64,000 nt of DNA, taken from the sequence record LC727697.1; one strand, 5' to 3'. A model generated the notes under the pieces. That model saw nothing but the letters and a program-made list of their open reading frames with translations. It was not told the DNA's origin and made no database searches. Below are positions 367-22,266 of this stretch, one piece after another. Position 1 is the stretch's first letter, and each line of letters begins with the position of its first letter. The position numbers and the translations under genes are program-made.

Positions 367-504
367 CTAATGTGATGTGCGTCTTATCCTCGTACATGCT
401 AGCAGAGCAAGCATCGGGCTTGCAACCGAGTTCTTCGAACATACGCTGTAGGCGAACTTGGCACTGACATGCTCGAACTGTGCCTTTAGGTACTTGCGCT
501 TCAT
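367..504 (-). CDS. small hypothetical protein (45 aa, MKRKYLKAQF...)
   Basis: Manual translation; GGAG Shine-Dalgarno upstream of ATG. Confidence 0.5.
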   Translation of the reverse strand: MKRKYLKAQFEHVSAKFAYSVCSKNSVASPMLALLACTRIRRTSH

Positions 505-574
505 AGCAATTACTCCGTATAGCTACATATATGCTAACATCTTACCGCAGTAATGCAACAGGAGATTGACTTGT

Positions 575-606
575 GCAAATGCAAATAAGATTAATTTGCA
601 TTTACA
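575..606. promoter_or_regulatory. hexamer-phased operator (Fur-box-like)
   Basis: GCAAAT GCAAAT AAGATT A ATTTGC ATTTAC. Confidence 0.7.
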
Positions 607-640
607 ACTAGGACATAAAAGGAAAGGGGCAGTTGCCCCT
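585..640. repeat. 56-bp direct repeat copy 2
   Basis: Identical to 1-56. Confidence 0.95.
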
Positions 641-645
641 TTCCT
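617..645 (-). terminator. intrinsic terminator
   Basis: AGGAAAGGGGC-AGTT-GCCCCTTTCCT stem, T-run on minus strand, just after stop of 659-1114. Confidence 0.85.
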
Positions 646-658
646 GTGTTAGCAGCGC

Positions 659-1114
659 TTACTTTTTGCTGCCGCCTTTGCTGCCGCCTTTGCGGGCGGG
701 CTTAGCTTCGGCTGCCGGGGTCTCCGGCGCATCCTCGGTCTGCGCCGCCGGGGCTTCTGCTTGCGCTTCTGCCGTTGCCTGGGCATCGGTCTGCGCCGCC
801 GGCGCGGGGAGGGGTTGCCCTTGTTCGCCGTTGCTAACGGAGTGCTTTACTGCATCCTCGAACGCCCGTGCAATGCGGATTGCACTGAACACGCCTTCCT
901 GTGCAAACTGCACCTCTACGCCGTTAACGGTAGCGTGCATGCTCGCGTTCCAGCTACGCTGGGTTTTTGTGCTGTAGAGCGGGAAAGCTTGCCCTACTAC
1001 TACCCCGTTAACTTTTAGGTCGAGCACACTTCCGACCTCCTTGTTAGCGGTGCGCACGATGCGCAGGGTGCCGATGTTCTCTACCGTTACAGCAGGGATG
1101 CTTACATTAGACAT
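659..1114 (-). CDS. early protein with Ala/Pro/Lys-rich tail; paralog of 18824-19528
   Basis: GC-rich codon usage, GGAG SD; shares NGVV.GQ...R.W.A...VQF.Q..VFSAIRI.R with 18824-19528. Confidence 0.85.
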   Translation of the reverse strand: MSNVSIPAVTVENIGTLRIVRTANKEVGSVLDLKVNGVVVGQAFPLYSTKTQRSWNASMHATVNGVEVQFAQEGVFSAIRIARAFEDAVKHSVSNGEQGQPLPAPAAQTDAQATAEAQAEAPAAQTEDAPETPAAEAKPARKGGSKGGSKK

Positions 1115-1146
1115 AGCTTGTACTCCGTTGTGTTGTTTATGTGTGT

Positions 1147-1175
1147 AGCTTACTAGGGATGCTACACTGTGTCTA
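1147..1175 (-). promoter_or_regulatory. sigma70-type promoter
   Basis: TAGACA-17-TAAGCT with upstream A-tracts. Confidence 0.7.
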
Positions 1176-1462
1176 CTACTTTTTAAAAACTTTTATGCTT
1201 GCAAGCACATTGCTTGTTTGCATGTCTGTAGTGTGTAGGATTTCGCAGGTATTGTACAATTGTATATTTCTATTAAGACAGGCACGTTAATAGACGACGT
1301 CTTTTCTGCATTTTGCTATGTAAAGCTACAGGTGTGCGCATGCGCATGGGCCCTAAAACGCGCTACAAGCGCGCATAACAGCGTTTGTGCGCGTAGCTGT
1401 ACTAACGCATTGCTTAGCACTACTACGCAGCATACAGCGCTTACAGCGCTTTTAGCGGCATT

Positions 1463-1573
1463 GCAAATGTGAATTATTCTTATTCTATCTATTGTAGCAA
1501 ATAAGAATTAATCGCAATTACAAATAAGAATTATTTACATCACTAAATGCAAATAAGAATAATTATTATTTGT
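1463..1573. promoter_or_regulatory. cluster of four Fur-box-like operators
   Basis: GCAAAT GTGAAT T ATTCTT (1463); GCAAAT AAGAAT T AATCGC (1497); ACAAAT AAGAAT T ATTTAC (1520); GCAAAT AAGAAT A ATTATT ATTTGT (1549). Confidence 0.7.
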
Positions 1574-1589
1574 ATTTGCAATGATAAAA

Positions 1590-1661
1590 GATAAAGAAAA
1601 AGATAAAGATAAAGAAAAAGATATTGAAAAAGAAAAAGATATTGATAATGAAAAAGAAACT
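1590..1661 (+). repeat. 12 in-phase purine-rich hexamers GA(T/A)ANN
   Basis: G at 1590, 1596 ... 1656; units GATAAA/GAAAAA/GATATT/GATAAT/GAAACT. Confidence 0.9.
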
Positions 1662-1664
1662 AAA

Positions 1665-2009
1665 TTATTTCTTTCTTTTATAAATTATTGACTGAACGGT
1701 AATACAGAATATATAAGTCAAAACTGACATAAAATAATAACTTGTTATAAGAATGGTTATTATTAAACACGAAACAAATGTAGTTATATTGACTGGATTT
1801 TTCAATCCTATATAATATAAAGGAGTTATAAGTAAAAACAATAATAACGTCGTAAGGAACAACGAAATGGTTTGCATGAATATGTCGTGAATAAATGACA
1901 TTTTATCATATGAAAAATATATACATCCGACACTACAGCGAAATATATTAAAACCATTATACAATGGATAATGTCTTTTACTTATTATACTTTTATTATC
2001 AAACAACAT
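1665..2009 (-). CDS. hypothetical membrane protein
   Basis: 114-aa ORF with two hydrophobic segments; start uncertain. Confidence 0.5.
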   Translation of the reverse strand: MLFDNKSIISKRHYPLYNGFNIFRCSVGCIYFSYDKMSFIHDIFMQTISLFLTTLLLFLLITPLYYIGLKNPVNITTFVSCLIITILITSYYFMSVLTYIFCITVQSIIYKRKK

Positions 2010-2416
2010 ATAGGTATTAAAGATAATCGTATAGGATAAAATAAATTGTATTTCTTAATACGTTTATGCGTATGTACATGCGTATGCAAACACATATAGC
2101 ACACTCATATTCGCATTTTATATTGCAATGCAAGGTTGAGATAAGAATCCAAAATTCAAATATAACTTTTGTAATATGATTTAGGAAATATATTTCATAG
2201 AATGGTTTTTGATATAAATGTAAGTAGCTAATTAGATATGATTATTGTATTTCATTTAAAAAGTGTCCAGTAAAATGTGCGACGAGGTGTTTCTAGTGAT
2301 ACATATCCTATAGAATATTTCGCTGTACTTAACCTTATTCTCTTATTGTTTAAAATTACTATGTATTCTGTCCATTTGCTAAGATAAAAAATTGATGACA
2401 TTTAACACCTACAATG

Positions 2417-2446
2417 AAAGGAAGGGGTTAAACCCCCTTCCTTTTT
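2417..2446. terminator. intrinsic terminator (bidirectional-like)
   Basis: AAAGGAAGGGG-TTAAA-CCCCTTCCTTT. Confidence 0.8.
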
Positions 2447-2672
2447 ATTTAACTATTATCACTAATGCTATGAACACTATGCCCCATGCAATGTCTCCGT
2501 TAAATATAGCACCAATCCCGACAATGACCGAAAATACATCAATTAATGATCCTTTTCGTTCGGGCGACATAAATGCTGTGCATAGCAACAGTGCGATAAA
2601 ATACCAGATATTTCCAGTAACAATTGCAACAATAGAAGCTATGCATGCAACTATATTAGCAAGACCGCCCAT
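2445..2672 (-). CDS. small membrane protein
   Basis: Multiple hydrophobic helices; GGGG SD-like upstream. Confidence 0.7.
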   Translation of the reverse strand: MGGLANIVACIASIVAIVTGNIWYFIALLLCTAFMSPERKGSLIDVFSVIVGIGAIFNGDIAWGIVFIALVIIVK

Positions 2673-2673
2673 A

Positions 2674-3402
2674 TTATCCCCCTTGGGTCACGATGTATTC
2701 CCAATTAAGCCGGGTGACTCGACCGTCGACATTGCTGCGAATGCTCACTTGATCGTCGATTCCGCAGATGTTACCTTGTACATATTTCCATCGGGCAACA
2801 TCGTTGGGATACGAACGAAGGGGAACTACAGCCATAACTTCTTGCCCGAGATGATACCACCCGATGTCCAGATCGCTTTGCAAGCGGGCATATACGAGGC
2901 GAATCAATTCGGGACTAACAGACCATACCAAGTCTTTCTCTACATCCCACCACAAGACTGCCCCGCCGCGGATGGCCTTGCCGTCACTGAAGTAGTTACT
3001 GAATGAACAGAACTCGTCAGTAGTGTAGTCGAGGATCTCCCGACGATATTGTTCCCTGACCATCGAACCCGGTGCAAGGCACATACCATACACCGGAAAG
3101 TATCGGAAGAAGCAGCTCATGTTGCTTACTTGCAACGGCTGATCATCGTCATCGTAAACTTGAAACACCGTAGGGCTCGACTCGACTGAGCGGAAAGAAG
3201 AAACGAAGTTTTTAACACTCTCTTCGAATCCATCCAGCCGACCGGTGGTAGGACGCAACCATTTCAGCAGACCAGTGTTGTCCATGTCTACGTTTACGCT
3301 AAAAGAAAGATACTTAGACATAATATAATCTCTTATAAAAAGGTTATTTGGATCTGTTCTTGCTTTCGTGCATATTATTGCGCATATTGCTATATGCGTC
3401 AA
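2674..3402 (-). CDS. hypothetical protein (likely start MSKYLSF at 3321)
   Basis: Long ORF, GC-richer core. Confidence 0.75.
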   Translation of the reverse strand: MTHIAICAIICTKARTDPNNLFIRDYIMSKYLSFSVNVDMDNTGLLKWLRPTTGRLDGFEESVKNFVSSFRSVESSPTVFQVYDDDDQPLQVSNMSCFFRYFPVYGMCLAPGSMVREQYRREILDYTTDEFCSFSNYFSDGKAIRGGAVLWWDVEKDLVWSVSPELIRLVYARLQSDLDIGWYHLGQEVMAVVPLRSYPNDVARWKYVQGNICGIDDQVSIRSNVDGRVTRLNWEYIVTQGG

Positions 3403-3413
3403 CAGGTATTTTA

Positions 3414-3932
3414 TTATAAAAATTTGTCAGTAAATGCCTTAGCAATAGAAGTACGAATGTTAATAGGTACCCATTCGCACATGAGCAAATCTACCATATT
3501 GCACGATCCTTCCATAGAGATAAGTTTTGTAGTTGTAATATCGTTATCAAAAAGATAGTGAAGATCTGGTTCTATATCGGAAATATTTACTTCTACCCCG
3601 CCCGAATTGATAAGAGTTAGCTGCAATGGCCTGTCAAAGAAAACACCTTCTGAACTAACTCTGTCTTTTATTTCATTAACGAATTCTACCAATTCGTCGT
3701 AGCCTGTGTAAAAGCTACAGAACCAAGTTCTACGTTCTATCTTCTCGAAATACAATTTTGCAGGAAGCTGCATAATTTCTTCGTAAACTTTTTCTACAAA
3801 ATTATCCGATGAAGTATCTACTTCAAACCGAATAAAAATATTACCATTCATTTTATGAAGTTTCATTTTTACAACCTCGCATGTTGGTATCTTATATATT
3901 AAAACTATACATACTATTATGTGTGAATTCAA
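3414..3932 (-). CDS. hypothetical protein (likely start MKMKLH near 3869)
   Basis: ORF downstream of promoter 3904-3932. Confidence 0.75.
   Translation of the reverse strand: MNSHIIVCIVLIYKIPTCEVVKMKLHKMNGNIFIRFEVDTSSDNFVEKVYEEIMQLPAKLYFEKIERRTWFCSFYTGYDELVEFVNEIKDRVSSEGVFFDRPLQLTLINSGGVEVNISDIEPDLHYLFDNDITTTKLISMEGSCNMVDLLMCEWVPINIRTSIAKAFTDKFL
3904..3932 (-). promoter_or_regulatory. sigma70-type promoter
   Basis: TTGAAT-17-TATAGT with TG extension. Confidence 0.75.
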
Positions 3933-3949
3933 GCACTAAATTGTAACAA

Positions 3950-3968
3950 GTAAATAAGATTAATTTGC
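3950..3968. promoter_or_regulatory. Fur-box-like operator
   Basis: GTAAAT AAGATT A ATTTGC between terminator and promoter. Confidence 0.7.
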
Positions 3969-3985
3969 ACTTACACTTAACATTC

Positions 3986-4015
3986 AAAAGGAAAGGGGCT
4001 TAAATCCCCTTTCCT
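3986..4015 (-). terminator. intrinsic terminator
   Basis: AGGAAAGGGG-CTTAAAT-CCCCTTTCCT. Confidence 0.8.
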
Positions 4016-4045
4016 AATAAATGTAGTTCACACCCAGTGGCGGCA

Positions 4046-4243
4046 TCAAACAGCATTGGTGATTGGAAGATCTGTATAATACTGAACAAGACGTTCAGTA
4101 TACATGTATTCCTGTAAATCTAAGCGAACTGCATTGTCTTTCAGTTCGCTATAGAAATGCTCACAGTTGAGTTGCTGCATTACATCAACCCATGCAGAAA
4201 GAATTTCTCTCGATGCATGTTCTACTCCGAGTGTGCTACGCAT
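4046..4243 (-). CDS. hypothetical protein
   Basis: 65 aa, AGGAG SD, own promoter and terminator. Confidence 0.7.
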   Translation of the reverse strand: MRSTLGVEHASREILSAWVDVMQQLNCEHFYSELKDNAVRLDLQEYMYTERLVQYYTDLPITNAV

Positions 4244-4316
4244 GATATAATCTCCTGCGTTGTTTTATGTACAACTACATAATAGCACATTTAGAGCTAT
4301 TGTAAAGCGGTTTCTG

Positions 4317-4532
4317 TTATAGCAACGACAGGTCTGTCGTGTTAATAGTCTTATATATTTCACTAAAATAAAGGATATCGTAGTAAGAACCGCGCTGGCC
4401 AGTAAACATATACGATGTCCCTTCATGAACAATAATAGAAGTATCCATGATCTCGGGGTTAATTTCGTTATCTACCGAAAATTCAGCGACAACACCATTG
4501 CTACGGTTTTGAAGAATGATTTTGTATTTCAT
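4317..4532 (-). CDS. hypothetical protein
   Basis: 71-aa ORF with GAGG SD. Confidence 0.7.
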   Translation of the reverse strand: MKYKIILQNRSNGVVAEFSVDNEINPEIMDTSIIVHEGTSYMFTGQRGSYYDILYFSEIYKTINTTDLSLL

Positions 4533-4814
4533 TTGCTTTTCCTCGTAGATAAAAGAGTACTTCTTTTCTGTTCAATGCATGATAAATGCACTATTGATAT
4601 AATATCTAGCAGTTGAAGTTTCTTATCAAAATTCTCAGCAAACTTAATCTTTAGACAAAGAATGAACTTCATCTTTGTTCTTTTGGTGCTATATGCTTAC
4701 ATTTTTATTATAAACTATTATAGCATGATTGTATTTTATATAAACAGAAAGTTTGTAACAGGTTCTGCAAATTCTAATTATTTGCGATTGCATATATCAA
4801 AAAATATAGAACTA

Positions 4815-5156
4815 TTATTTTTGTTCAAAGTATACCCAAACATATGCAAACTCGGGAGCTCGCATGATATGTGCTATAACTTTCTCTTTATTACAATTAT
4901 TTAATTCATCTACTTGTTTTTTCAATTGTTGAACAGCTTTAAATATTTGTTCCTTATTCTGAGTATAAGTACACTCAAAAAAGAATCCATCATTTAACTT
5001 TCCATCGTTATCAATAAAAGCAAGACCTACCATATCTTCGCCGACAACTATAAATTTGTCAGTGACAGGAATATTGTCTAGATCGGAAATTGTAGTAACT
5101 TCGTTGAGTTTCATAATTTCTCTTTTTACTACGAATATGTAAATATTATCTATCAA
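4815..5156 (-). CDS. hypothetical protein
   Basis: ORF in co-oriented operon. Confidence 0.65.
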   Translation of the reverse strand: MIDNIYIFVVKREIMKLNEVTTISDLDNIPVTDKFIVVGEDMVGLAFIDNDGKLNDGFFFECTYTQNKEQIFKAVQQLKKQVDELNNCNKEKVIAHIMRAPEFAYVWVYFEQK

Positions 5157-5340
5157 TAATATTGTCTACTTCAGACAATGCACGCATCATATCTATTACA
5201 GACCCAATTCCTGTTACAGTTACAACTAAGGCCATAAATACTATTATAGCAGCAGGTCCCAAGCCGTATTTGATAAAGATAGCATTAATTAATACTGCAA
5301 ACATAGACGGGACCAAAGCAAACAGATGTGCAAGATACAT
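5146..5340 (-). CDS. small membrane protein
   Basis: Two hydrophobic helices. Confidence 0.65.
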   Translation of the reverse strand: MYLAHLFALVPSMFAVLINAIFIKYGLGPAAIIVFMALVVTVTGIGSVIDMMRALSEVDNIIDR

Positions 5341-5350
5341 TACTACTTCC

Positions 5351-5554
5351 TTAGTACATAATGTATTTTTCTAGAATGATAAGCTCGGCAGTTGCATTAT
5401 CTTCTTCATAATATAGATTTGGCTGAGGCATATCACCCTGTTCGGAAAATTCGTTAATAAATGCTTGTCCTAGACGGAGTGGCTGACCGGATTTATTAGT
5501 GCTATAATAGTTTGCCTTCCATTTGGCAAAATCGCACATAGATAGTTTCTTCAT
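5351..5554 (-). CDS. hypothetical protein
   Basis: 67 aa; LRLGQAFIN motif typical of small phage proteins. Confidence 0.7.
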   Translation of the reverse strand: MKKLSMCDFAKWKANYYSTNKSGQPLRLGQAFINEFSEQGDMPQPNLYYEEDNATAELIILEKYIMY

Positions 5555-5569
5555 AATATCCCCTGAATA

Positions 5570-5776
5570 TTATTTGTATTGTTGAACAGAATAATCATGC
5601 CACATTTGATGTCCTCGAATCCATTCGTTACGTTCATACGGCTCATTTTTGGTATACGGGCAGTCTGTATATTTCTGCCCTAGTTTAGCTGCATGAACAC
5701 CTTCGCTAAACGGAGAAAAAGATGCACGCTCGCACAGAAATTCATCTACCAGCATGTCTGTTGTTTTGTTACTCAT
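5570..5776 (-). CDS. ribosome modulation factor (Rmf)-like protein
   Basis: EG..AA..G.....CPY......R.EW.RG pattern resembles Rmf GY.AG..G.....CPY....RS.WL.GW. Confidence 0.5.
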   Translation of the reverse strand: MSNKTTDMLVDEFLCERASFSPFSEGVHAAKLGQKYTDCPYTKNEPYERNEWIRGHQMWHDYSVQQYK

Positions 5777-6095: not shown

Positions 6096-6277
6096 TTTTC
6101 ATTTCTTGGCAATTCTGCTTCGCAAGACTTTACAAGTTCTTTATACTGCATATATAACGAAGCAGACTCAGAATTCGACGCTAGGCTGTATCCTATCAGA
6201 ATGCCAGTTACAAAAAAACATATAGAAGAAATTATTAGTATTCTTTTAGCTCTGTGTGTATCAACATATTCATTCAC
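6002..6277 (-). CDS. membrane-anchored protein
   Basis: N-terminal TM, CE...C periplasmic part. Confidence 0.7.
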   Translation of the reverse strand: MNEYVDTHRAKRILIISSICFFVTGILIGYSLASNSESASLYMQYKELVKSCEAELPRNENCQVIVYAIPTPEVEEEKLEIQTILRGVEIK

Positions 6278-6470
6278 AGAACTTCTCCTAGCTTACAGTC
6301 TACTGCCTCTTCAAATTCAGCATAAGACATTTGCTGGTTATCGAAATAAATAACGTCATGAACGGCATCATAAATGTAAGTATAAATGTTGCCGAAATAT
6401 TTAATCTGCACAGAATTTAAAAGTTTCTTTTTCAGCGACATAACTGCTACTCCTGCGGATTTATGAGTTA

Positions 6471-6499
6471 AATGTACTATGTTAACAAGCTACAGTCAA
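6471..6499 (-). promoter_or_regulatory. sigma70-type promoter
   Basis: TTGACT-17-TACATT. Confidence 0.75.
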
Positions 6500-6518
6500 C
6501 TGGTATTTTTCTTAAATT

Positions 6519-6543
6519 GCAAATAAGATTAATTCGCGTTTGC
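6519..6543. promoter_or_regulatory. Fur-box-like operator (25-bp form)
   Basis: GCAAAT AAGATT A ATTCGC GTTTGC. Confidence 0.7.
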
Positions 6544-6557
6544 TAGTTAGCAGCCGC

Positions 6558-7042
6558 AAAAAAATCCCATCTAAGGGATCCTTTTGCCCAAAAACATTCG
6601 ATTCAGACATCTGTCTTTTAAACGAATCGAAGCGGTGTTTCGGCATTCATAATTATCATCATCATAATGTATATTTAATGCTGCGGCGGCATACTCTTCA
6701 CCTCCAGGAAGCATATAATAGTTTTAGGTTAATGATTCCTACTAGCACTAAGGCATATGCCAGTAGACCGTTTTAAGACCTGCTACAAAGCGGGGTAAAG
6801 CATAGATACATACAGTGTACCTTTGTAGCTGTCCCGCCTGTAGCAGCAAGGTCTAGCAGTGTCCAGGGGCAGGTACGTCATTGACCGATTTCCGATTTAA
6901 GGAAAGGTATGCTGCGCCTTCCACGTTACTAGACCTTGTACACCTGTTTGCCGCAGCCCGCGAACATCGCGGGCGGGCTGCTTGCGGGACGGTGTCTCCC
7001 GTTTAGTGTTGCTTACAATGCGTTATGCTGTATTGCTTTGTG
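6558..7042 (-). ncRNA. candidate structured ncRNA 1 (about 480 nt)
   Basis: Promoter 7048-7076, terminator-like hairpin 6558-6581, no long minus-strand ORF, many long helices. Confidence 0.7.
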
Positions 7043-9899: not shown

Positions 9900-10076
9900 T
9901 TAGTATGTTACTCCTACCCAAAAGTAGCCTACTCGCAGGTAGCAGTGATGGCCGTCATAATATATCGGCTTACACCAAATAAAAGGTTCATTGGGTTTGC
10001 TACCCCAAGTCGGATCCCATCCTATATTCCAATCACCATAACGCACAGCCCAATATATATGTTTTAAGATATTCAT
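9900..10076 (-). CDS. small Trp/Tyr-rich protein (58 aa)
   Basis: Manual translation MNILKHIYWAVRYGDWNIGWDPTWGSKPNEPFIWCKPIYYDGHHCYLRVGYFWVGVTY. Confidence 0.55.
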   Translation of the reverse strand: MNILKHIYWAVRYGDWNIGWDPTWGSKPNEPFIWCKPIYYDGHHCYLRVGYFWVGVTY

Positions 10077-10228
10077 TTATTTTTGCCTCTATCATAATAG
10101 CTAGTTGATATTTTTGTAGTTATCATAAGATAATTACTACTTAGCATCAAAGACAAAGTAGTCATGCCTTCTTTATTGTCACTTAATACAGGAATAAAGA
10201 ACTGGAATTAATTATTCTTTATTTTTTG

Positions 10229-10282
10229 CAGTATTGATGCTGATACAAGAAACTGTAATAGTCTATATCAGCATCAATACTG
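10229..10282. repeat. perfect 17-bp inverted repeat
   Basis: CAGTATTGATGCTGATA-20-TATCAGCATCAATACTG. Confidence 0.95.
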
Positions 10283-10287
10283 ATAAT

Positions 10288-10518
10288 TTACTCTGTAGAC
10301 GTAGAAACTAGTGCTTGAACATTAATCGAGAAATTGCTATACATTTGATTAGTAAATTTCTCGAAATCATCTGATTCGACGAATTTTGCCATTGCAGCCA
10401 AAAAAGCTTTCTTTTTATCACTTTCGGGATCATCAGTAGGATGGGCATATTCACTGATAGCTTCGTTTTGGCCATGGATACCGATGTTAAAGACATATCC
10501 GTTATATTTGAGGCTCAT
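10288..10518 (-). CDS. hypothetical protein
   Basis: 76 aa, AGGAG SD. Confidence 0.7.
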   Translation of the reverse strand: MSLKYNGYVFNIGIHGQNEAISEYAHPTDDPESDKKKAFLAAMAKFVESDDFEKFTNQMYSNFSINVQALVSTSTE

Positions 10519-10572
10519 TTATGCTGCTCCTTCTGGTAGGATCATAATGATAATTCTCTCGCTTTACTTCAA

Positions 10573-10626
10573 TTATTTCTTTGCATTCTTATAAAGCTGA
10601 TTTATTGTTTCCCAGTCGGGTTGTTC
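10573..10626. repeat. 54-bp direct repeat copy 1
   Basis: 51/54 identical to 13848-13901. Confidence 0.9.
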
Positions 10627-10829
10627 GTAGATGTCATATGGGTGAGCTCCGATTCAACAGCCTGTAGTGCTGCTCGCATTCTGGCATTCTCTGCCTTTAG
10701 CTGTTCCAGCTCAGCTATAAGACTGAGAATTTCTTGTGGCTTTGCTGATGCTATTAACGCCACATAGCTATCAAATTTACAATCGAGAGCCTGTTCCGCT
10801 AGCTTCTTCATTTTGTTGATGTCAATCAT
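10602..10829 (-). CDS. ead/Ea22-like protein
   Basis: MIDINKMKKLAE...A.P..IL.LIAELE.L.AEN pattern. Confidence 0.6.
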   Translation of the reverse strand: MIDINKMKKLAEQALDCKFDSYVALIASAKPQEILSLIAELEQLKAENARMRAALQAVESELTHMTSTNNPTGKQ

Positions 10830-10853
10830 TTGGTGGCTCCTTTGAGGATTTCG

Positions 10854-11168
10854 TTAAGATCGCAGCATCTCGGCGAGTTGATCGACAGTCTCTCGCAGCG
10901 CCTCGTTCTCCGCCTTGAGTTTGTCGATCTCGTCTAGCAAGTCGAGGACGGCTCGGGGGTTGGCGGCAGCACAGAAAGTGGCGTTAGCCTTGTCCTGCTC
11001 CAAATCGCTGTAAAAGCCTTCGTTACCGATCACGACTTCGCCATTGTCCGCTCGGATTACAGGAAACAGATTCGACCATGCAATGTCATCGCCTTCCTCC
11101 CAAGTTGCATACCACGGACCCGGCGTAGCCAGTTTTGCTAGCTTTTTTATTTTGTTGGTGTCGGTCAT
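10854..11168 (-). CDS. ead/Ea22-like protein
   Basis: LAKLATPGPW...ANATFCAAANP.AVL.LLDE pattern typical of the Ea22 family. Confidence 0.7.
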   Translation of the reverse strand: MTDTNKIKKLAKLATPGPWYATWEEGDDIAWSNLFPVIRADNGEVVIGNEGFYSDLEQDKANATFCAAANPRAVLDLLDEIDKLKAENEALRETVDQLAEMLRS

Positions 11169-11356
11169 GGAATCATCTCCGCCATTTCGGTAATAGCCTT
11201 TGCTAGGGCAAGGGCGTGTTCACAGTTACGGGCGCTTTTGCGAAGTGGAGTGCTGACGATGCGCATGTTAGTCACCCAAAATGTAAGCGATTAGGCAGGC
11301 GTAAATGGCCAGTCCAGGATGGCCAGAGAAGGCAAGGACTAGAGCGATTACCCAGA

Positions 11357-11623
11357 TCATGCGATCTCCTCCTTCGCCTGCAGTGTCATGTTGAGGTTAT
11401 ATTGCTTAGCGCAGGAGCAAAGGCGGCGAAGTTCATCGTTCTCGTCCGCCATGTGAAAAAATTCGATGTTGTAGTTGTTCAGCTTCAACTTACCGCTGCT
11501 GAATTTGGCAGATACGCGATGGCCTTGCGTGTGCAGGCTAAGGCCAAGATAGCGGAGTATCGACCTGTGGTCGGTTGGGATAGGTTCGTTCTTTGTGTTG
11601 ACGACAAACAAATTGATGGTCAT
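11357..11623 (-). CDS. hypothetical protein
   Basis: ORF in GC-rich island, tightly spaced. Confidence 0.65.
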   Translation of the reverse strand: MTINLFVVNTKNEPIPTDHRSILRYLGLSLHTQGHRVSAKFSSGKLKLNNYNIEFFHMADENDELRRLCSCAKQYNLNMTLQAKEEIA

Positions 11624-11626
11624 GCT

Positions 11627-12028
11627 TCACCCGAAGTCATACGCTTTCAGAACGCCATGTTTATCGTAGCCGACTTGACCACAATCTATGCTGCCTACCC
11701 AATCAGGAAAGTTTGCATGGGTGTTGTTCTTCCAATCCACTTCAACCAAACGCTCTTGCATGACGCAAATGAAGCCTCCGATTTCTAGCCAGCGTCCGCG
11801 CGCCAAGTAGCTGCCGGAACAGCTACCTTCCCAATCGTTGCACCGCTCACCCCTGTCATTAATCGGGAACTTCAGGACGTAATGCTTAGATAGAAAGCAT
11901 GCCCGTGTGATACCAATCTTCGGCTCACCGTACTTGGCAAACAACCGATTCAGTTGTTGCTGGGCAAGTTCATTGCGGTGCTGGGCGATGAAACCGCCAA
12001 ACAGCAATTTGTCCAACACAATGTTCAT
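11627..12028 (-). CDS. minimal protein-kinase-like fold protein
   Basis: G..R..F...YVLK.P....G..CN.WE ... MQER ... D..QVG...AYDFG. Confidence 0.5.
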   Translation of the reverse strand: MNIVLDKLLFGGFIAQHRNELAQQQLNRLFAKYGEPKIGITRACFLSKHYVLKFPINDRGERCNDWEGSCSGSYLARGRWLEIGGFICVMQERLVEVDWKNNTHANFPDWVGSIDCGQVGYDKHGVLKAYDFG

Positions 12029-12052
12029 TCTGCGTGTCCTACGTGGAGACCA

Positions 12053-12487
12053 TTACAGATCCCGGATAGCTTCGGCGTTTTTTTCAAACCACTTGACTAG
12101 CTTTTGCATAGCTTCGGCTGGTGTCTTGCCCTTGATCTTGCGGAACTTGATCACTTCCGAACGATAGGGGATAGACCACGTTAGCAGCTCAATTTCGACC
12201 GGCGAACCTTCTGGCAATACATTCCCGCGATTGTCACACAAATTCATCATAAAGCGCATGTAACCGCTCGCATTCATCAGAATGCTGTTCGGGGCTTCGG
12301 AAGCGCAACCGACATTCGCAAACGAAATTGTCATCGACGGACCAAGGTTATCGGAAACCGACGCGGCGGCGATGTAATTCGGAAAAATCTTAGCCATGGA
12401 AGTTTTGAAGTCTTCGGCGGCTTGCTTGGTGTTTTCTACGATCATTTTTGAATCTCCGGGGCTGTTAGTCATGGCTTGTCTCCCCAT
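12053..12487 (-). CDS. hypothetical protein
   Basis: ORF in GC-rich island. Confidence 0.7.
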   Translation of the reverse strand: MGRQAMTNSPGDSKMIVENTKQAAEDFKTSMAKIFPNYIAAASVSDNLGPSMTISFANVGCASEAPNSILMNASGYMRFMMNLCDNRGNVLPEGSPVEIELLTWSIPYRSEVIKFRKIKGKTPAEAMQKLVKWFEKNAEAIRDL

Positions 12488-12735
12488 TTCACTTCAAGCC
12501 ACAGGTCAACAGACTGGCGTCCTTCGGCATGCACCGCACAGTCGAAGCCGAGACTACGCAACACTTTGAGGATCGCTTCGCTGCGCCGCGAGGTGCCGAT
12601 GCCGAACCCATAGGCGCGGGTAGTGTACACGTACTTTCCTTCTGCGGCTGCTTTGGCGATGTCGTTGAGGATGGCATCGACATCGTCTTTCGCTCGCGCT
12701 ATGTCACGGGCTTGCTCAGCGGTCAGTCTGCTCAT
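12469..12735 (-). CDS. hypothetical protein (88 aa, MSRLTAEQARDIA...)
   Basis: Internal ATG at 12735 overlaps stop of 12732-13055; the longer ORF-track start is antisense/overlap noise. Confidence 0.7.
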   Translation of the reverse strand: MSRLTAEQARDIARAKDDVDAILNDIAKAAAEGKYVYTTRAYGFGIGTSRRSEAILKVLRSLGFDCAVHAEGRQSVDLWLEVKWGDKP

Positions 12736-13055
12736 TTCACTGCCTCGATACCGGCTTCTTGGAGGGCTTCTTCCTGCGCCTTGAGCATTGCTTCGTAGGC
12801 TGGGAGGCATAGACCTCCTATGTAGTTTGTATCTGGGCAGACCACGGCGTCGTAGGTATCTTCCAACCAAGACGGGCACTGCCGCGGCATCGGGACGTAA
12901 TCCTTCATCAGTGCCACACGACTGGCTTTCCAGGCCTCGTAGCGTGCCTGAACATGCGGGTTGAGGTACAAGTCGTCGACTGCATTGTACGCAAGCGGTG
13001 CCGAAGAACGAGTCCGAACCCACGATTCAAATTCTTTTTTCATGTTAGGCTCCAT
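12732..13055 (-). CDS. hypothetical protein
   Basis: EFE.W...Y....VQA.YEAW.ASR pattern typical of prophage accessory genes. Confidence 0.7.
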   Translation of the reverse strand: MEPNMKKEFESWVRTRSSAPLAYNAVDDLYLNPHVQARYEAWKASRVALMKDYVPMPRQCPSWLEDTYDAVVCPDTNYIGGLCLPAYEAMLKAQEEALQEAGIEAVK

Positions 13056-13131
13056 TAAATCAAAACGTTATGTGTTACTTCTACTATACGTACTAACAGT
13101 ATACAACGTATTAGTACGTATAGCAAACGAA

Positions 13132-13719
13132 TTATTTGTCTATCCACGCAAAGTAAAATGACTTGTCCTCGGGACAACCTACTTTGATGTACTGATACGT
13201 GTCAACATCAGTATTCTCTTTTACTAGAGCTACTAATCTATCAATACAATTGAAATTTGACTCGCTACTATCTTTACGCACAAACCACGGAGTGATCTGG
13301 ATTTCTGATCCCAAATGATACATAACTGCTTTTATGTTTTTTGCAACAAACCAACTGTCAGAAATATCTACTGCACTGTGGTTAACAGTTACATAATCTG
13401 CATTATCGGGTGTTACACTAAATAGGTAATCGACATCCGGTAAACGAACCATACTAAGTGTGGCATATCCTTTAGTGATGTGTTTAGCTTCTATACCAAG
13501 TTCGTTCAGTATACTTTCAGTAGAATGACTCCAAAATTCTACTATATTGATAATAACACGCCACTGAGCTGATTGAAGGATCCGATATTGGATGATACGT
13601 AACTTGCCGGTCCACTCATAGCTTCGTTCATCCATAACTGCTTCGACTTCGATATCATCCCCGTCTTTGATATCCCATGCATAGCACATATCATTTCTCC
13701 TGTATATAGTTTTATGCAA
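13132..13719 (-). CDS. hypothetical protein (likely start MCYAW at 13689)
   Basis: AGGAG SD upstream of 13689. Confidence 0.75.
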   Translation of the reverse strand: MHKTIYRRNDMCYAWDIKDGDDIEVEAVMDERSYEWTGKLRIIQYRILQSAQWRVIINIVEFWSHSTESILNELGIEAKHITKGYATLSMVRLPDVDYLFSVTPDNADYVTVNHSAVDISDSWFVAKNIKAVMYHLGSEIQITPWFVRKDSSESNFNCIDRLVALVKENTDVDTYQYIKVGCPEDKSFYFAWIDK

Positions 13720-13771
13720 CTACATGTAATGTAGCACTTCAAAATAGAAAACACAATAGGATTAAATTTGT

Positions 13772-13838
13772 GCAAATAAGATTAATTAGTATTTGCTAAT
13801 ATAGATCCAAAAAGAAAGGGAATTATAATTCCCTTTCT
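13772..13838. terminator. operator + intrinsic terminator
   Basis: GCAAAT AAGATT A ATTAGT ATTTGC then AGAAAGGGAA-TTATAA-TTCCCTTTCT. Confidence 0.8.
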
Positions 13839-13847
13839 AAATATGCA

Positions 13848-14396
13848 TTATTTCTTTGCATTCTTATAAAGTTGATTTATTGTTTCCCAGTTGGGATGTT
13901 CAGAATCCCATACTTGCCAATTAGGATAACAAAGTTTTATTTCAGATAACCTCTTTGTAGTAACGTCATTAAACAATGAAAAATCTTCCTTCATTGTTTC
14001 GTATACATTGTCCGGTAACATGTTGTCGGCTTTTTTGTAATATTCTGTTACTTCGTTGAAACTCGAGTATTTCTTTAAAAGTCGACGAAATTCTTTTACA
14101 TTCTTTTCATATCTTGCATACAAAGGTGCTAATACGTTGAATGCATTATAATTAAATCCTATCTTATATACTACATTCATTTCTCGAAGATCTGTCATGA
14201 ATCGATTCTGAACTTCGTATAATTCGTTAAATGAAGGAGTAAGAACACCAATACGTTTAACAAACGACAGTGATGACTTGCGCTTAGATTGATCATCACT
14301 ACCTGAAGGTTCGAATTTAAATTCCAAGTCGGCAACTGGATTTACCTTGTAATGTTCTAGAAAGAAATAAAATACTTCTAATGCTTTGTAGTTCAT
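13848..14396 (-). CDS. hypothetical protein
   Basis: 182-aa ORF; its last 54 bp are duplicated at 10573. Confidence 0.75.
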   Translation of the reverse strand: MNYKALEVFYFFLEHYKVNPVADLEFKFEPSGSDDQSKRKSSLSFVKRIGVLTPSFNELYEVQNRFMTDLREMNVVYKIGFNYNAFNVLAPLYARYEKNVKEFRRLLKKYSSFNEVTEYYKKADNMLPDNVYETMKEDFSLFNDVTTKRLSEIKLCYPNWQVWDSEHPNWETINQLYKNAKK

Positions 14397-18823: not shown

Positions 18824-19528
18824 TTACTTGCTTTCCTGCGCCGCCCCGGCGATCGCTGCGTTCTTTTCAGCGACCTTTTCGGCGCGCTCAGCTTCGCGCT
18901 TGGCCTTGCGTTCGTCAGCTTCGCGCTTGGCAGCCGCCGCTTTTTCTTCGCGTTCCTTCTTCTCGGCATCGCGCTTGGCCTTGCGTTCGGCAGCTTCTGC
19001 CTCGGCCTGCGCTTTGCGGTTGATCAGGAAGCCCTTGCCGCTGTTCGCCTTGCCGGCGCCGAGTTCAAAGACGAAGCCCAGGCGACGCAGCTTGTTGCCG
19101 ACGGAAGTGCTGTTCTGCTCGAAGTTGGCCTTGTCGACCCCGTCGAACACCAGGGTAGCTTCGTCGAAGCCGGTGTGGGTGATGGCCGCCTTGACGATCG
19201 CGATCGCGTTGCTGAGCCGGCTTTCGTCGGTGAGCGGTTTCGGACCCTTCTGCCCGGGAACTTTCGGTTCCGGGGTGTACTTGGCCGCCAGTTCCTTGCC
19301 GTCGAGCGCCTGCTCGATTTCGCGGGTGATGCGGATCGCGCTGAACACTTCCTTCTGCTCGAACTGTACGACGGTGCCATCTGCCAGTTCGACTTCGGCG
19401 GTCGCCGACCAGGTGCGCTTGCTCGGGGTGGTGTAAGTAGCCATGGTCTGGCCGATGACCACGCCGTTGATTGCCAGTGCCAGGACGTGCTGTTTGTCGG
19501 TACGTTGACGAGTGATATGTACGGACAT
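18824..19528 (-). CDS. early protein with Ala/Lys/Glu/Arg-rich coiled-coil tail; paralog of 659-1114
   Basis: Strongly GC3-rich codons, GAGG SD, tandem promoters, terminator. Confidence 0.9.
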   Translation of the reverse strand: MSVHITRQRTDKQHVLALAINGVVIGQTMATYTTPSKRTWSATAEVELADGTVVQFEQKEVFSAIRITREIEQALDGKELAAKYTPEPKVPGQKGPKPLTDESRLSNAIAIVKAAITHTGFDEATLVFDGVDKANFEQNSTSVGNKLRRLGFVFELGAGKANSGKGFLINRKAQAEAEAAERKAKRDAEKKEREEKAAAAKREADERKAKREAERAEKVAEKNAAIAGAAQESK

Positions 19529-19735: not shown

Positions 19736-19901
19736 GCATTTTTTAAAATATTTTTAAATTATTTTTTACCATCTTGTATACGCGCGCGAGCTATATATAG
19801 CAAGGTCAATCAGTATGGTGTAGAATTATAATTTATAAACAAATCAACTACTTATCTACTATCCATTTCCAAGTATGCTACCAATCCATATACTGGGCAG
19901 T

Positions 19902-20025
19902 GCAAATGCAAATAAGATTAATTATTATTTGCATATTCTTTTTCGTTGCAAATGCAAATACGAATTAGTCTTATTTACAATAACAAATGAAATTACAAAC
20001 GCAAATAAGAATTAGTCTTATTTGC
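19902..20025. promoter_or_regulatory. cluster of three 25-bp Fur-box-like operators
   Basis: GCAAAT AAGATT A ATTATT ATTTGC (19908); GCAAAT ACGAAT T AGTCTT ATTTAC (19954); GCAAAT AAGAAT T AGTCTT ATTTGC (20001). Confidence 0.75.
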
Positions 20026-20029
20026 AATA

Positions 20030-20113
20030 ACAAATGAAATAGAGATGAATAAGGAAATGAATAAGGAAGTGACAAATGAAATAGAGATGAATAAAGAAAT
20101 GAATAAGGAAGTG
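20030..20113 (+). repeat. 42-bp purine-rich tandem duplication
   Basis: ACAAATGAAATAGAGATGAATAA(G/A)GAAATGAATAAGGAAGTG x2. Confidence 0.9.
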
Positions 20114-20132
20114 AATAAGAGAATATCTGCTC

Positions 20133-20410
20133 AAAAAGAAAGGCAAACATAAGTCTGCCTTTCTGATATAAATGCTCCTCAGAACAGTCACGTGCTCTGT
20201 ATCTGGGCAAATTATGCTCGTCAGCACAACGGAGCGGTATATCTTGCCTAAGGAATTGTTATTTGTATAAAGCCCCTTACTCTTTATACTCAGCTAGAAT
20301 ATACAATACTAAGGAATCACTAGCATCATCCTTAGGTCTATCTGGTTATACCAGAATCGACATATCTAAACAACATAGGAGGTATTTACGTATGCAACAG
20401 CGCATAACTT
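20133..20410 (-). ncRNA. candidate structured ncRNA 3 (about 275 nt)
   Basis: Promoter TTTACA-17-TATACT (20417-20445); terminator AGAAAGGCA..TGCCTTTCT-TTTT (20133-20164); several hairpins. Confidence 0.65.
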
Positions 20411-20630
20411 GTATATAGTATATGCATATGTGTATGTAATGTAAATGTTATTTTTATTAATTTACAGATAGTTTCTGTTCTTAATCTTTTCTAAACTATC
20501 AAAAATAAAAGATTAGCCAATGCATCGACAACATGCGCGATTGCATTTTGCATATACACTCAGAACACAAAATGTAAATGCAAAATGCAAATGCGGATCC
20601 GAGTTTGTGCCTAAAATTGAATTTGGAAAC

Positions 20631-20673
20631 CGGAATTGCGATTTAGAATTCCAAAACCTAAATCGCAATTCCG
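20631..20673. repeat. perfect 16-bp inverted repeat
   Basis: CGGAATTGCGATTTAG-11-CTAAATCGCAATTCCG. Confidence 0.95.
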
Positions 20674-20686
20674 AATGGCCGAATAC

Positions 20687-21094
20687 TTACTGATGAATGC
20701 CCATCTGGTGTTTCAGGTACTCGAGGGCGTTGTAGCTATTGCACTCGGCTTCGCTGCGAAGCTGACCTTCGCTTGCCGGGTAATATAGATCGCCTTTGCC
20801 TTGTGCTAGCAAGAAGCACATAGCACGAACGAGACCTTCAGACTGCACATGACTTACAGAAGACATCTGTGCATTGAGAAGTTCGGTGCCGTTAAACTCG
20901 ATGTAGTCGCCGCTTTCGAGACGACTCGCAGCATGTTCACGTCCGGTCTTGCGGTTGAAGTTATCCATTTCCGAACATGCTGCTACGGAAATACGGATCT
21001 TGTTGCCGGCGGTTTCCCAGGCAACAGTAGCGCCACGGCGGTTATCGATCTGTTGAGTTTCTTCGTTGTAGAAACGAATGTGAGTATGTTGCAT
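20687..21094 (-). CDS. conserved-looking phage hypothetical protein
   Basis: G.TVA...A.CS..DNF.RK.GR..A..RL motif; GC-rich codons. Confidence 0.8.
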   Translation of the reverse strand: MQHTHIRFYNEETQQIDNRRGATVAWETAGNKIRISVAACSEMDNFNRKTGREHAASRLESGDYIEFNGTELLNAQMSSVSHVQSEGLVRAMCFLLAQGKGDLYYPASEGQLRSEAECNSYNALEYLKHQMGIHQ

Positions 21095-21129
21095 GTATAC
21101 TATACCTTTTCTAGACCATTAGTTGTTTG

Positions 21130-21537
21130 TTGAGTTTGGGTAGCACTCACCTACCCCCTTCACTGCGAGATTACTAACTGAAGGTTTTGCTTTTACGTTT
21201 AATACATGGTGTAATCTAATATCTTACAGCATGTATACGGTTGCATAGAACTTTATATCATATTAAAGTATTTTAGAAAGGACTGTCTGGGATAGCAACC
21301 ATCACCTACAGCTTCCTGATAGTGCATTCCTTCTAATACACTATCCTACGAGAAAATTTCGAAGGTTCTTTGGAAGTTTTTATGCCCATTCAAATATAAT
21401 GTGTAGGCTATAATGCCTAGGAATGAGCTGGATATTTGTTCTTTACACAGCATCTTCCAACCGTATTTGCCTGTGTATCCTGTAACATCACTGTTACAGA
21501 CTTTTTAACTTACTTAACAAGTAACTGTTTAGTAAGC
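21130..21537 (-). ncRNA. candidate structured ncRNA 4 or long structured 5' leader (about 400 nt)
   Basis: Promoter TAGACA-16-TG-TAATAT (21544-21571); long-range helix, GUGA tetraloop, G-U pair valid only on minus strand. Confidence 0.6.
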
Positions 21538-21602
21538 ATGTATATATTAGCATAATGCACTTATTTGTCTATGGTTATATTGTGTGTTTAGTAGAAAGCT
21601 CA

Positions 21603-22266
21603 TCAATTTTTATACAGGAAATCAATATATACATCTATGCCAGTATCTGGAGGCCAAGGATAAGCCCAACATTCGTTACTAGTAATATCTCCCATCACCC
21701 TTTCACTTATTATATTTGAAATACAGAATATACCTATATGATTTTTTAAATTAGTTAATATAATATATTTGTATGGTTTTGATACAAATATTAATTCACT
21801 AACACCATTAAGATTATATAGCCGTGCCATATCATGTCTTATACTAATATAATCACTAGCACTCGAAAATATTAATATTTCAATCATATGGTTTGTGCAT
21901 ATCCTTTATACATATCCTCGTAAATTCTGATACTATTAGTACCTATTAATGAAAATATAGTTATTCTATCAGCATCTCGAAAATATGTAGGTTTTGAAAA
22001 TCTAAGAATGTCATAAAAATGACAATCTATAAAGTGACATCCTCTTTGCAATTTAAATATATTGAATTTCATACTAGTATACCTGTATCTAAAAATCTAT
22101 ATATTGCAGCGTTTACATAGAATGTTTGATGTATATATTTTGTTATTGCAGGTAATACATATGTAGCGCCTACAGAATAATTATAATAGGTATCATTACT
22201 AATGTATATTCTATTCGATTTCATCAAAATAGATGAAGAATTATAAGACAGATCGAATATATTCAT
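21603..22266 (-). CDS. three small ORFs (21603-21887, 21884-22072, 22069-22266), microprotein family-like
   Basis: EILIFSSASDYI, NIFKLQRGCHFI, NIFDLSYNSSSI; overlapping stop/start. Confidence 0.6.

Follow-up and report, generated by a model that had tools for sequence, protein, structure and literature searches.

The stretch of DNA analysed here (the window, 64,000 nucleotides) corresponds to positions 1-64000 of Pseudomonas phage sp. 30-2 (100% identity), a PA5oct-like jumbo phage. The window was 96-99% identical to ten other Wroclawvirus records, with 98% identity to PA5oct; its coordinates are approximately 28,658 minus the PA5oct coordinate, the two orientations being opposite. We focused on a 508-bp gap (21095-21602) that separates two minus-strand genes, 21603-21887 (EST35_0033 in PA5oct) and 20687-21094 (EST35_0035), the latter encoding a protein of 135 amino acids (aa), and on the putative 5' untranslated leader of the 135-aa gene, which is located within this gap (about 445 nt; 21095-21538, minus strand). 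The region under study sits within the 39-kb direct terminal repeat of PA5oct (PMC7318152). The annotation of the gap varies among records: PA5oct and PAC2 place a 35-aa coding sequence (CDS) there (EST35_0034, "gp34", 21453-21346), no minus-strand open reading frame (ORF) is annotated in the gap of six other records, and 30-3, Callisto, and MIJ3 annotate nothing there.

The initial annotation had proposed a promoter at 21544-21571, and a consensus scan confirmed at these positions a minus-strand promoter of the sigma-70 type with a TG-extended -10 element. Its -35 hexamer, TAGACA (21571-21566), is followed by a 16-nt spacer and by TAATAT (21549-21544), which is preceded by TGC (TGC TAATAT, 21552-21544), with 9 matches to the 12 consensus positions. 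Both hexamers were invariant in the 10 genomes compared. The transcription start, about 7 nt past the -10 element, would be located at approximately 21538 (± 10 nt).

Expression was assessed using assembled RNA sequencing (RNA-seq) contigs with summed word depth, from four runs (X1-X4) of one 2020 study. Contigs of all four runs bear letters specific to PA5oct (A at 20726, A at 20927, and C at 21585) and therefore derive from PA5oct infections. In each of the four runs, summed depth was 478-5,700 upstream of about 21555 and 0.1-0.94 million from 21516 to 20709, and this very high depth ran unbroken from the leader into the 135-aa gene. The jump exceeded 50-fold between bins 21517-21617 and 21416-21516 in the four runs, i.e., at about 21517-21545. 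Low-depth contigs reading through from upstream broke at 21502-21555, as expected with a very strong start near 21538. At the other end, depth fell 4- to 17-fold in the bin holding a hairpin at 20631-20673, the drop reaching 20- to 370-fold one bin further on. Depth climbed again over ncRNA001, a non-coding RNA (ncRNA) of PA5oct that maps to window positions ~20156-20391, directly downstream of the 135-aa gene and about 700 nt beyond the leader (PMC7318152). The level of the leader and gene was comparable with that of the published ncRNAs, which include ncRNA002 (window ~6250-6700) and which numbered five in the 2018 preprint on PA5oct and four in the final paper (PMC7318152).

The minus strand was devoid of any terminator-like site between the promoter and the gene, as the initial annotation had stated for the sequence preceding gene 20687-21094. 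The locus combines a promoter motif, an abrupt onset of RNA depth, continuity of this depth into the gene, and a leader with no coding signature. These data support the view that the predicted promoter drives transcription of the region, as a long leader running on into gene 20687-21094. In PA5oct, the highly transcribed early genes are those of the terminal repeat "between gp34 and gp105", and the Watson strand, equivalent to the minus strand of the window, accounts for almost all early transcription (PMC7318152); a promoter near 21538 is therefore positioned at the head of this early block. Altogether, we lean towards the reading that the region is a 5' untranslated leader of about 445 nt that acts in cis on a monocistronic, extremely abundant early messenger RNA (mRNA).

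The promoter region also contains a short repeated sequence. Within 450 nt, the minus strand carries three copies of the 9-mer TATACATGC, at 21536-21544 (promoter and start), 21229-21237 (middle of the leader), and 21091-21099 (start codon of the gene); the first two copies lie in a 20-nt repeat with 80% identity. Six copies were counted on both strands of the window, versus 1.5 expected. This 9-mer could be an operator or protein-binding site, or the trace of a duplication.

Another explanation, which we regard as very improbable, is that the region encodes one or more small proteins, either the 35-aa gp034 or a 16-aa ORF, so that the unit would be a small operon. Indeed, the upstream part of the terminal repeat is densely filled with genes of 35-60 aa, and the 35-aa ORF (21346-21453, minus strand), annotated as noted above in PA5oct and PAC2, is intact in all 10 genomes. 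However, this last observation is uninformative because these genomes are more than 97.6% identical. The substitutions in the 35-aa ORF showed no excess at third codon positions (four of its 7 variable sites, with 3 synonymous and 4 non-synonymous changes; small numbers), as opposed to 13 of the 15 variable sites in the 135-aa gene, and its Shine-Dalgarno-like GGAAG directly abuts the AUG. The 16-aa ORF (21150-21100), which is preceded by the strong Shine-Dalgarno-like AAGGGGGU and ends 5 nt before the main AUG, has its start buried in two predicted hairpins (HP8 and HP9, described below; probability 0.99). Moreover, the leader ORFs gave no Pfam or PHROGs family matches, and the upstream ORFs of divergent relatives share neither sequence nor position. 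Since the 35-aa ORF has no coding pattern and no other leader ORF has a usable ribosome site outside hairpins, the region was treated as non-coding; judging from its substitution pattern, gp034 is probably not a gene. Translational coupling via an upstream ORF was also rejected, as such ORFs are not conserved among the relatives.

When folded from 21538, the leader was predicted to form about eight local hairpins followed by a G-poor, unstructured stretch. From the 5' end on the minus strand, the first of these was HP1 (21508-21537), a stem-loop of 7 + 5 pairs (probability 0.95; -9.7 kcal/mol; fold score z -2.4). It begins 1 nt from the inferred start and would lie at or next to the 5' end of the transcript if this start is at ~21538, a position known to about ± 10 nt from contig depth. 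A change at 21527 in Paride converts a C-G pair of HP1 into U.G, a pair that is retained on the minus strand only. HP2 (21480-21499; 8-9 pairs; pair probability 0.98; z -3.6) was found as initially claimed, its GUGA tetraloop on the minus strand being closed by 8 perfect pairs; Callisto breaks one of its pairs, at 21498. A weak element (21443-21477) is followed by HP4 (21384-21428), an 8-bp stem with an inner 5-bp hairpin at 21404-21419 (probabilities of 0.82 and 0.96; z -3.5). HP5 (21318-21345), an 11-bp hairpin with the loop AGAAGG, had a z of -7.7, none of 200 shuffles folding as well, and was invariant in the 10 genomes. Its sole mismatch in DNA, C/A on the plus strand, is a G.U pair on the minus strand, which agrees with the earlier description of this hairpin.

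The 3' half of the fold begins with HP6 (21277-21317), a branched or irregular hairpin that was the weakest element (z -1.55; 17 of 200 shuffles folding as well), followed by HP7 (21202-21236), a hairpin of 12-13 bp (z -2.9) that competes with a long-range helix for 21235-21236. HP8 and HP9 are adjacent G+C-rich hairpins at 21138-21184 (probability 0.99 each; z -2.7) that account for the further stems previously placed at about 21138-21185, and they are located just upstream of the open region containing the ribosome site. This last region (21095-21137) is a G-poor, C/A-rich, unstructured linker (minimum free energy (MFE) of -0.6 kcal/mol; z +1.6), with a weak Shine-Dalgarno sequence, AAGG, about 10 nt before the AUG. 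The unpaired probability was mostly at least 0.8 in its C/A-rich part and lower around the Shine-Dalgarno sequence and the start codon. For the last 53 nt of the leader, the MFE was -0.6 kcal/mol and 194 of 200 shuffles folded at least as well.

Two of these hairpins showed additional features. HP2, when read on the plus strand, has ACTTTTT after it and resembles an intrinsic terminator by score, with no plus-strand gene close by; it might serve as a stop for antisense transcription. In PAC2, HP7 differs over 10 nt of its loop and closing pair (21214-21223) by five substitutions and a deletion of 2 nt, with the stems intact. This change is not a simple inversion, unlike the one observed in the loop at 20647-20657 in Cassandra (see below).

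The central domain of the leader (21235-21466, minus strand) has two alternative long-range closures, 21458-21466/21235-21243 and 21431-21442/21247-21259, with probabilities of ~0.29 and ~0.35, respectively. The first is the 9-bp helix put forward in the initial annotation; its two sides are 100% complementary and enforcing it costs only 0.6 kcal/mol. A perfect 9-bp inverted repeat arose in 35% of dinucleotide shuffles of the leader, so this long-range helix alone proves nothing. Among the single hairpins, 0-3 of 200 shuffles folded as well as the native sequence for six of the seven hairpin windows, the exception being that of HP6, with a bias in favour of these windows because they were picked after folding. 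The complete 451-nt region had a z of -4.0 (minus strand) and -4.25 (plus strand). The genome background, obtained in 450-nt steps across the whole window (141 windows, minus strand), had a mean z of -1.6 with a standard deviation (sd) of 1.8. The predicted structure in the leader is therefore in moderate excess over the background. G.U pairs did not discriminate between the strands (6 on the minus versus 9 on the plus strand), and the local-hairpin energy was -104.6 versus -98.4 kcal/mol on the minus and plus strands, respectively.

In terms of sequence conservation, a distant blastn search against 50,697 phage records returned the leader only in 11 Wroclawvirus records, and the sequences that share it are 97.6-99.8% identical. 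IMG/VR scans with the 135-aa protein and with a profile found nothing, and a metagenome scan yielded one identical copy and two remote ones. Nucleotide diversity was 1.07% in the leader, 0.97% in the adjacent gene, 1.7-5.6% in the small upstream genes, and 0.47% in ncRNA001. Variable sites represented 19 of the 444 columns of the leader (4.3%) versus 13 of the 135 third codon positions of the gene (9.6%), a difference with a Fisher p of 0.03, or of 0.004 when the PAC2 cluster was counted as one event. This comparison provides moderate evidence that the leader is under constraint. A double change in Cassandra (21433 and 21257), located in the helix 21431-21442/21247-21259 of the single-sequence MFE fold, replaces A-U with G-C; at least one compensatory event was obtained in 3% of random placements of the observed substitutions.

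The leader was also compared with known RNA classes. At gathering thresholds, Rfam 15 identified only tRNAs in the window. The Rfam scan proposed in the initial annotation gave no support for a known family, with zero matches in the leader even at E ≤ 10, and the permissive search of 20400-22000 at this threshold found no family inside 21095-21602. No paralogs of the leader were found in the 64-kb window. The covariance model of YrlA (RF02553), a Y RNA-like RNA, gave no match in 1-40000 (E ≤ 0.05) or in 20400-22000 (E ≤ 10), and no tRNA-like T-arm motif was seen, as judged by eye. Three other candidates were rejected. An RNA of a type III toxin-antitoxin system (ToxI type) was discarded, as TRF reported only a 14-nt unit in 1.9 copies, no terminator precedes the gene, and the 135-aa protein had no PADLOC match. 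For a sponge of RsmA/CsrA, five GGA motifs were counted versus about 6 expected, i.e., no enrichment. Finally, for the "CA motif" of Crc/Hfq, the C/A-rich linker contained no AAnAAnAA match by eye.

The initial annotation had read the region as either a cis-regulatory leader of the riboswitch or thermometer type or a processed ncRNA. A transcribed leader that is predicted to be rich in hairpins is upheld by our analysis; the riboswitch or thermometer is not, in view of the lack of an Rfam match, a terminator pair, or an occluded ribosome site. Control of the 135-aa gene by a ligand-sensing riboswitch or an RNA thermometer would fit a long structured leader before a single gene, with alternative long-range pairings nearly equal in energy, but we consider it extremely improbable. 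No conserved aptamer was found by covariance model, and the minus strand of the leader holds no riboswitch expression platform, that is, no terminator/antiterminator pair or attenuator; in addition, none of the four runs shows a break in RNA depth between leader and gene. The ribosome site was unpaired in the MFE, centroid, constrained, and alignment folds, and the Shine-Dalgarno sequence and AUG occupy the least structured part of the leader in all predicted folds. A translational riboswitch or a thermometer would require the reverse. For a thermometer of the ROSE or fourU type, in particular, these two elements should be located in a weak, melting hairpin.

If the region is a leader acting in cis, its mode of action could be as follows. 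A strong host-type sigma-70 promoter with an extended -10 element would start an mRNA near 21538. This mRNA of about 850-900 nt would comprise the leader and the 135-aa gene (20687-21094) and end at the hairpin 20631-20673, and it would come first among the units of the highly transcribed early block within the 39-kb terminal repeat. The stem-loop at the 5' end and the chain of stable hairpins may shield the message from 5'-end-dependent decay (of the RNase E/RppH type), and the G-poor stretch of ~43 nt before the weak Shine-Dalgarno sequence may hold the ribosome site open, as a standby or enhancer-like site. The outcome, by analogy with leaders of the ompA type, would be a long-lived, well-translated early message. 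Both the protective and the translation-enhancing role are suggested by the anatomy of the leader, which would be constitutive rather than ligand- or temperature-sensing.

The hairpin proposed as the end of this unit (20631-20673, minus strand; 16-18 bp) is located just past the stop codon, where RNA depth drops, and is a candidate 3' end or terminator. Intrinsic termination may take place there, with a U-tract of only UUU. In Cassandra, the 11-nt loop of this hairpin (20647-20657) reads as the exact reverse complement of its counterpart in the remaining nine genomes, with unchanged stems. This is a clean inversion of the spacer between inverted repeats, which explains 7 apparent "variable sites".

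The 135-aa gene itself (20687-21094, minus strand; EST35_0035) forms the coding part of the transcript. The records of Paride, Ettore, Cassandra, and Deifobo annotate a 94-aa ORF on the plus strand (20849-21133) and leave out the 135-aa gene. A word-indexed protein search returned only the protein's own cluster, and an exhaustive HMMER search identified homologs with 33-45% identity in uncultured phage contigs. Given these remote homologs and the concentration of variable sites at third codon positions, the minus-strand 135-aa gene is the real one. No significant Pfam family was found for the protein (sub-threshold matches only, E 0.13 and worse), PHROGs gave only an unannotated sub-threshold match, and there was neither a PADLOC family nor a sequence match in the PDB. 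The AlphaFold2 model had a predicted local distance difference test (pLDDT) value of 90.7 and a predicted template modelling score (pTM) of 0.82; a fold search against the PDB and the AlphaFold DB clusters returned nothing at E ≤ 0.001 or a template modelling (TM) score of 0.4, and the matches in BFVD were uncharacterised viral proteins only. The conserved N-terminal part of about 65 residues (H..R..G.T.A...C..D.F..K.G) defines a family of small phage proteins with approximately 70 representatives and no Pfam coverage.

The contigs of these divergent relatives were arranged in four groups: A (L010, L011, and L012), B (L013), C (L014), and D (L018 and L019). The gene-free stretch before the homologous gene measured 935 nt in A, 750-876 nt in B, at least 267 nt in C, and 651 nt in D. 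Synteny with the next gene (244 aa) is suggested by position, DNA similarity there consisting of two short matches of 32-41 nt. The best similarity to the leader in the relatives had an E of 0.084 and was driven by the gene start. In groups A, B, and C, only the character of the last ~60 nt recurs, namely a hairpin, a G-poor linker, and then a Shine-Dalgarno sequence. RNA-like elements were observed upstream of the 43%-identical homolog, at 737-838 and ~1243-1397 in L010 and at 769-836, 1137-1240, and ~1462-1610 in L013. Groups A and B gave matches to the Y RNA-like family YrlA (36-46 bits, below the Rfam gathering score of 69), and each also bears a second module, homologous between the two, with a GGTTCGAATCC T-arm and a closing stem, in which ARAGORN called no tRNA. 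In group D, a tRNA was located within the 651-nt gap (L018, 1897-1979; L019, 144-226).

Several of our results weigh against a leader that acts in cis through its structure. First, the RNA-seq contigs are strandless, their depth is a crude measure of abundance, and they place the start only to about ± 10 nt; moreover, they cannot separate one long transcript from two adjacent abundant ones. Second, the leader window ranked only 15th to 22nd of the 141 background windows by fold score, depending on how the shuffle sd was pooled, and its structure is thus unexceptional for this genome; nor is the overall structure strand-specific, as the plus strand folds as well. Third, covariation is uninformative in either direction among 10 genomes that are 97.6-99.8% identical, the one compensatory pair, that of Cassandra, falling on one of two near-isoenergetic folds. 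The RNAalifold consensus of these genomes contained no compensatory pairs and four pairs that are broken in some genomes; it prefers the helix 21458-21466/21235-21243 and showed six pairs with one-sided, wobble-keeping changes and a covariation term of -0.18. Fourth, the leader sequence was not recognisable in the phages with a 33-45% identical protein, using either short-word blastn or an nhmmer profile. Finally, the gap of group D (33% protein identity) holds, along with its tRNA (51 bits), a G+C-rich terminator-like hairpin and, as seen by eye, a promoter-like site near the gene. A long gap before this gene family consequently need not be a leader, which keeps alive the explanation of a separate RNA discussed below.

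Part of these results would also be expected if the leader were a transcribed, functionless spacer, for example the remnant of a decayed gene or RNA gene between a strong promoter and an acquired G+C-rich gene, with incidental hairpins. The structure score falls within the upper range of the genome background, the two strands fold equally well, the long-range helix is at chance level, and no sequence conservation extends beyond the genus. The G+C content, which is 36% in the leader, 49% in the 135-aa gene, and 25-28% in the windows upstream, also suggests a mosaic origin. However, the rate of change in the leader is below half of that at the adjacent third codon positions, several hairpins, HP5 above all, are far beyond what shuffles produce, and the ribosome-proximal stretch is unusually unstructured, a trait that recurs in divergent relatives. 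Furthermore, 445 useless nucleotides would presumably be costly on one of the most abundant phage transcripts. We therefore consider a functionless spacer quite improbable.

A further alternative is that the leader is, or yields, a separate stable ncRNA, either cut from the 5' untranslated region (UTR) or made as a transcript of its own from the same promoter, that acts in trans in host takeover, like ncRNA001 and ncRNA002. The depth of the leader was 2- to 6-fold above that of the 3' half of the gene in two of the four runs (X1 and X4) but flat from leader to gene in X2 and X3, and contig depth is a poor measure of abundance. Among 24 of the 81 loose contig ends, adapter-joined ones clustered at 21354-21365 (three runs, both polarities) and were also found at 21319 and 21106; ends of this type likewise occur close to the published termini of ncRNA001 (PMC7318152). 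With 445 nt, the leader is also far longer than the 5' UTRs of the host or of phiKZ: those of PAO1 have a median of 46 nt, with none above 300 nt detected, and those of phiKZ are mostly 31-40 nt (PMC8244752). Moreover, the closest divergent relatives have RNA genes before the homologous gene, namely a tRNA in one and Y RNA-like matches in two others. On the other hand, the leader has no minus-strand terminator inside, no Rfam family, no paralog in the window, and no GGA enrichment. Overall, a separate ncRNA appears rather unlikely. A more specific version, to which we attach somewhat less probability still, would make the leader a fifth abundant, genus-specific phage ncRNA, cleaved near 21354-21365 and/or 21106 and acting in trans on the RNA-handling machinery of the host. 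It would belong to an RNA-rich early module, of which the Y RNA-like and tRNA genes at the same position in related phages would also be part.

The surroundings of the leader are themselves marked by RNA elements. Early-block windows on the minus strand (1-21600) were more structured than those of 21600-64000, with a mean z of -2.24 versus -0.99 (Mann-Whitney p = 6e-5, tRNA region excluded), and further strongly structured minus-strand windows start at 6695, 7595, 15245, and 18395. These data support the location of the leader in a stretch of the genome that is rich in structured and non-coding RNA. The base composition of the terminal repeat is uneven, with G+C-rich islands (45-63%) at 20687-21094, 18824-19528, and 10000-14000 and 25-35% G+C in the remainder, which suggests acquired genes, or codon adaptation to a G+C-rich host. 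In addition, a hypervariable stretch was found at 19850-20155 in genomes that are otherwise ~98% identical. With a diversity of 14% and 45 variable sites in every 100 nt, this stretch overlaps a repeat-rich PA5oct gene annotated as "extensin-like protein".

Transcription from "gp34" onward has already been published, and what is new here, modestly, is the reading of this region as a long non-coding leader instead of a CDS. If this reading is correct, "gp034" should no longer be annotated as a CDS in PA5oct-type phages but as a segment of a non-coding leader. The first early unit of this family of candidate therapeutic phages, which is also among the strongest, would then have a 5' UTR about 10 times as long as is usual in Pseudomonas or phiKZ. 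Such a leader would be a natural element that lends itself to studies of how early messages stay abundant and translated in a phage reliant on the RNA polymerase of its host, and the promoter and leader together could be used as a strong expression cassette. This locus is further evidence of a heavy investment in RNA elements by the terminal repeat; by itself, it brings no new mechanism to light.

Among known systems, ncRNA001 and ncRNA002 of PA5oct belong to the same lineage, terminal repeat, and strand as the leader, have a comparable abundance, and likewise have no Rfam family and no similarity outside the genus. They were called non-coding as no ORF follows or lies within them (PMC7318152), whereas the leader contains the annotated CDS gp034 and runs into a real gene, and it shares no sequence with either of them. 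The ncRNA001 region (20103-20506) had a depth of ~1 million and was the most conserved stretch nearby, its diversity of 0.47% comparing with 1.07% in the leader. Its fold score was the second most extreme of the minus strand with a per-window shuffle sd (-7.3, versus -3.3 to -4 for the leader) and the 16th with a pooled sd, with which the two elements were similar (-3.65 versus -3.94). Its adapter-joined contig ends, at 20389 and 20175, are close to those published for ncRNA001, and a promoter-like site was seen at 20445-20417.

The leader can also be compared with small RNAs (sRNAs) of Pseudomonas that derive from 5' UTRs, such as the rhlI-leader sRNA (cited in PMC8244752). Like these, it is an abundant 5' UTR that could release a fragment, and contig ends cluster within it. 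Unlike these, it has no terminator or attenuator that would release a discrete species.

The Y RNA-like RNAs (YrlA, RF02553) of the uncultured phage relatives resemble the leader in their position, in a long gene-free stretch before the homolog of the 135-aa gene, and in their architecture, that of a multi-helix RNA closed by a long-range stem; the leader differs from them in giving no YrlA match.

Finally, the leader of the Escherichia coli ompA gene is a stabilising 5' UTR with a 5'-terminal stem-loop, which protects the mRNA from 5'-end-dependent decay. The phage leader is about three times longer, with approximately eight hairpins, no sequence relation, and a 5' end that is placed by inference. 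Like the ompA leader, it is long and heads a very abundant mRNA; a stem-loop is predicted to begin 1 nt from its inferred 5' end, the stretch ahead of the ribosome site is unstructured, and the effect proposed here is constitutive and in cis.

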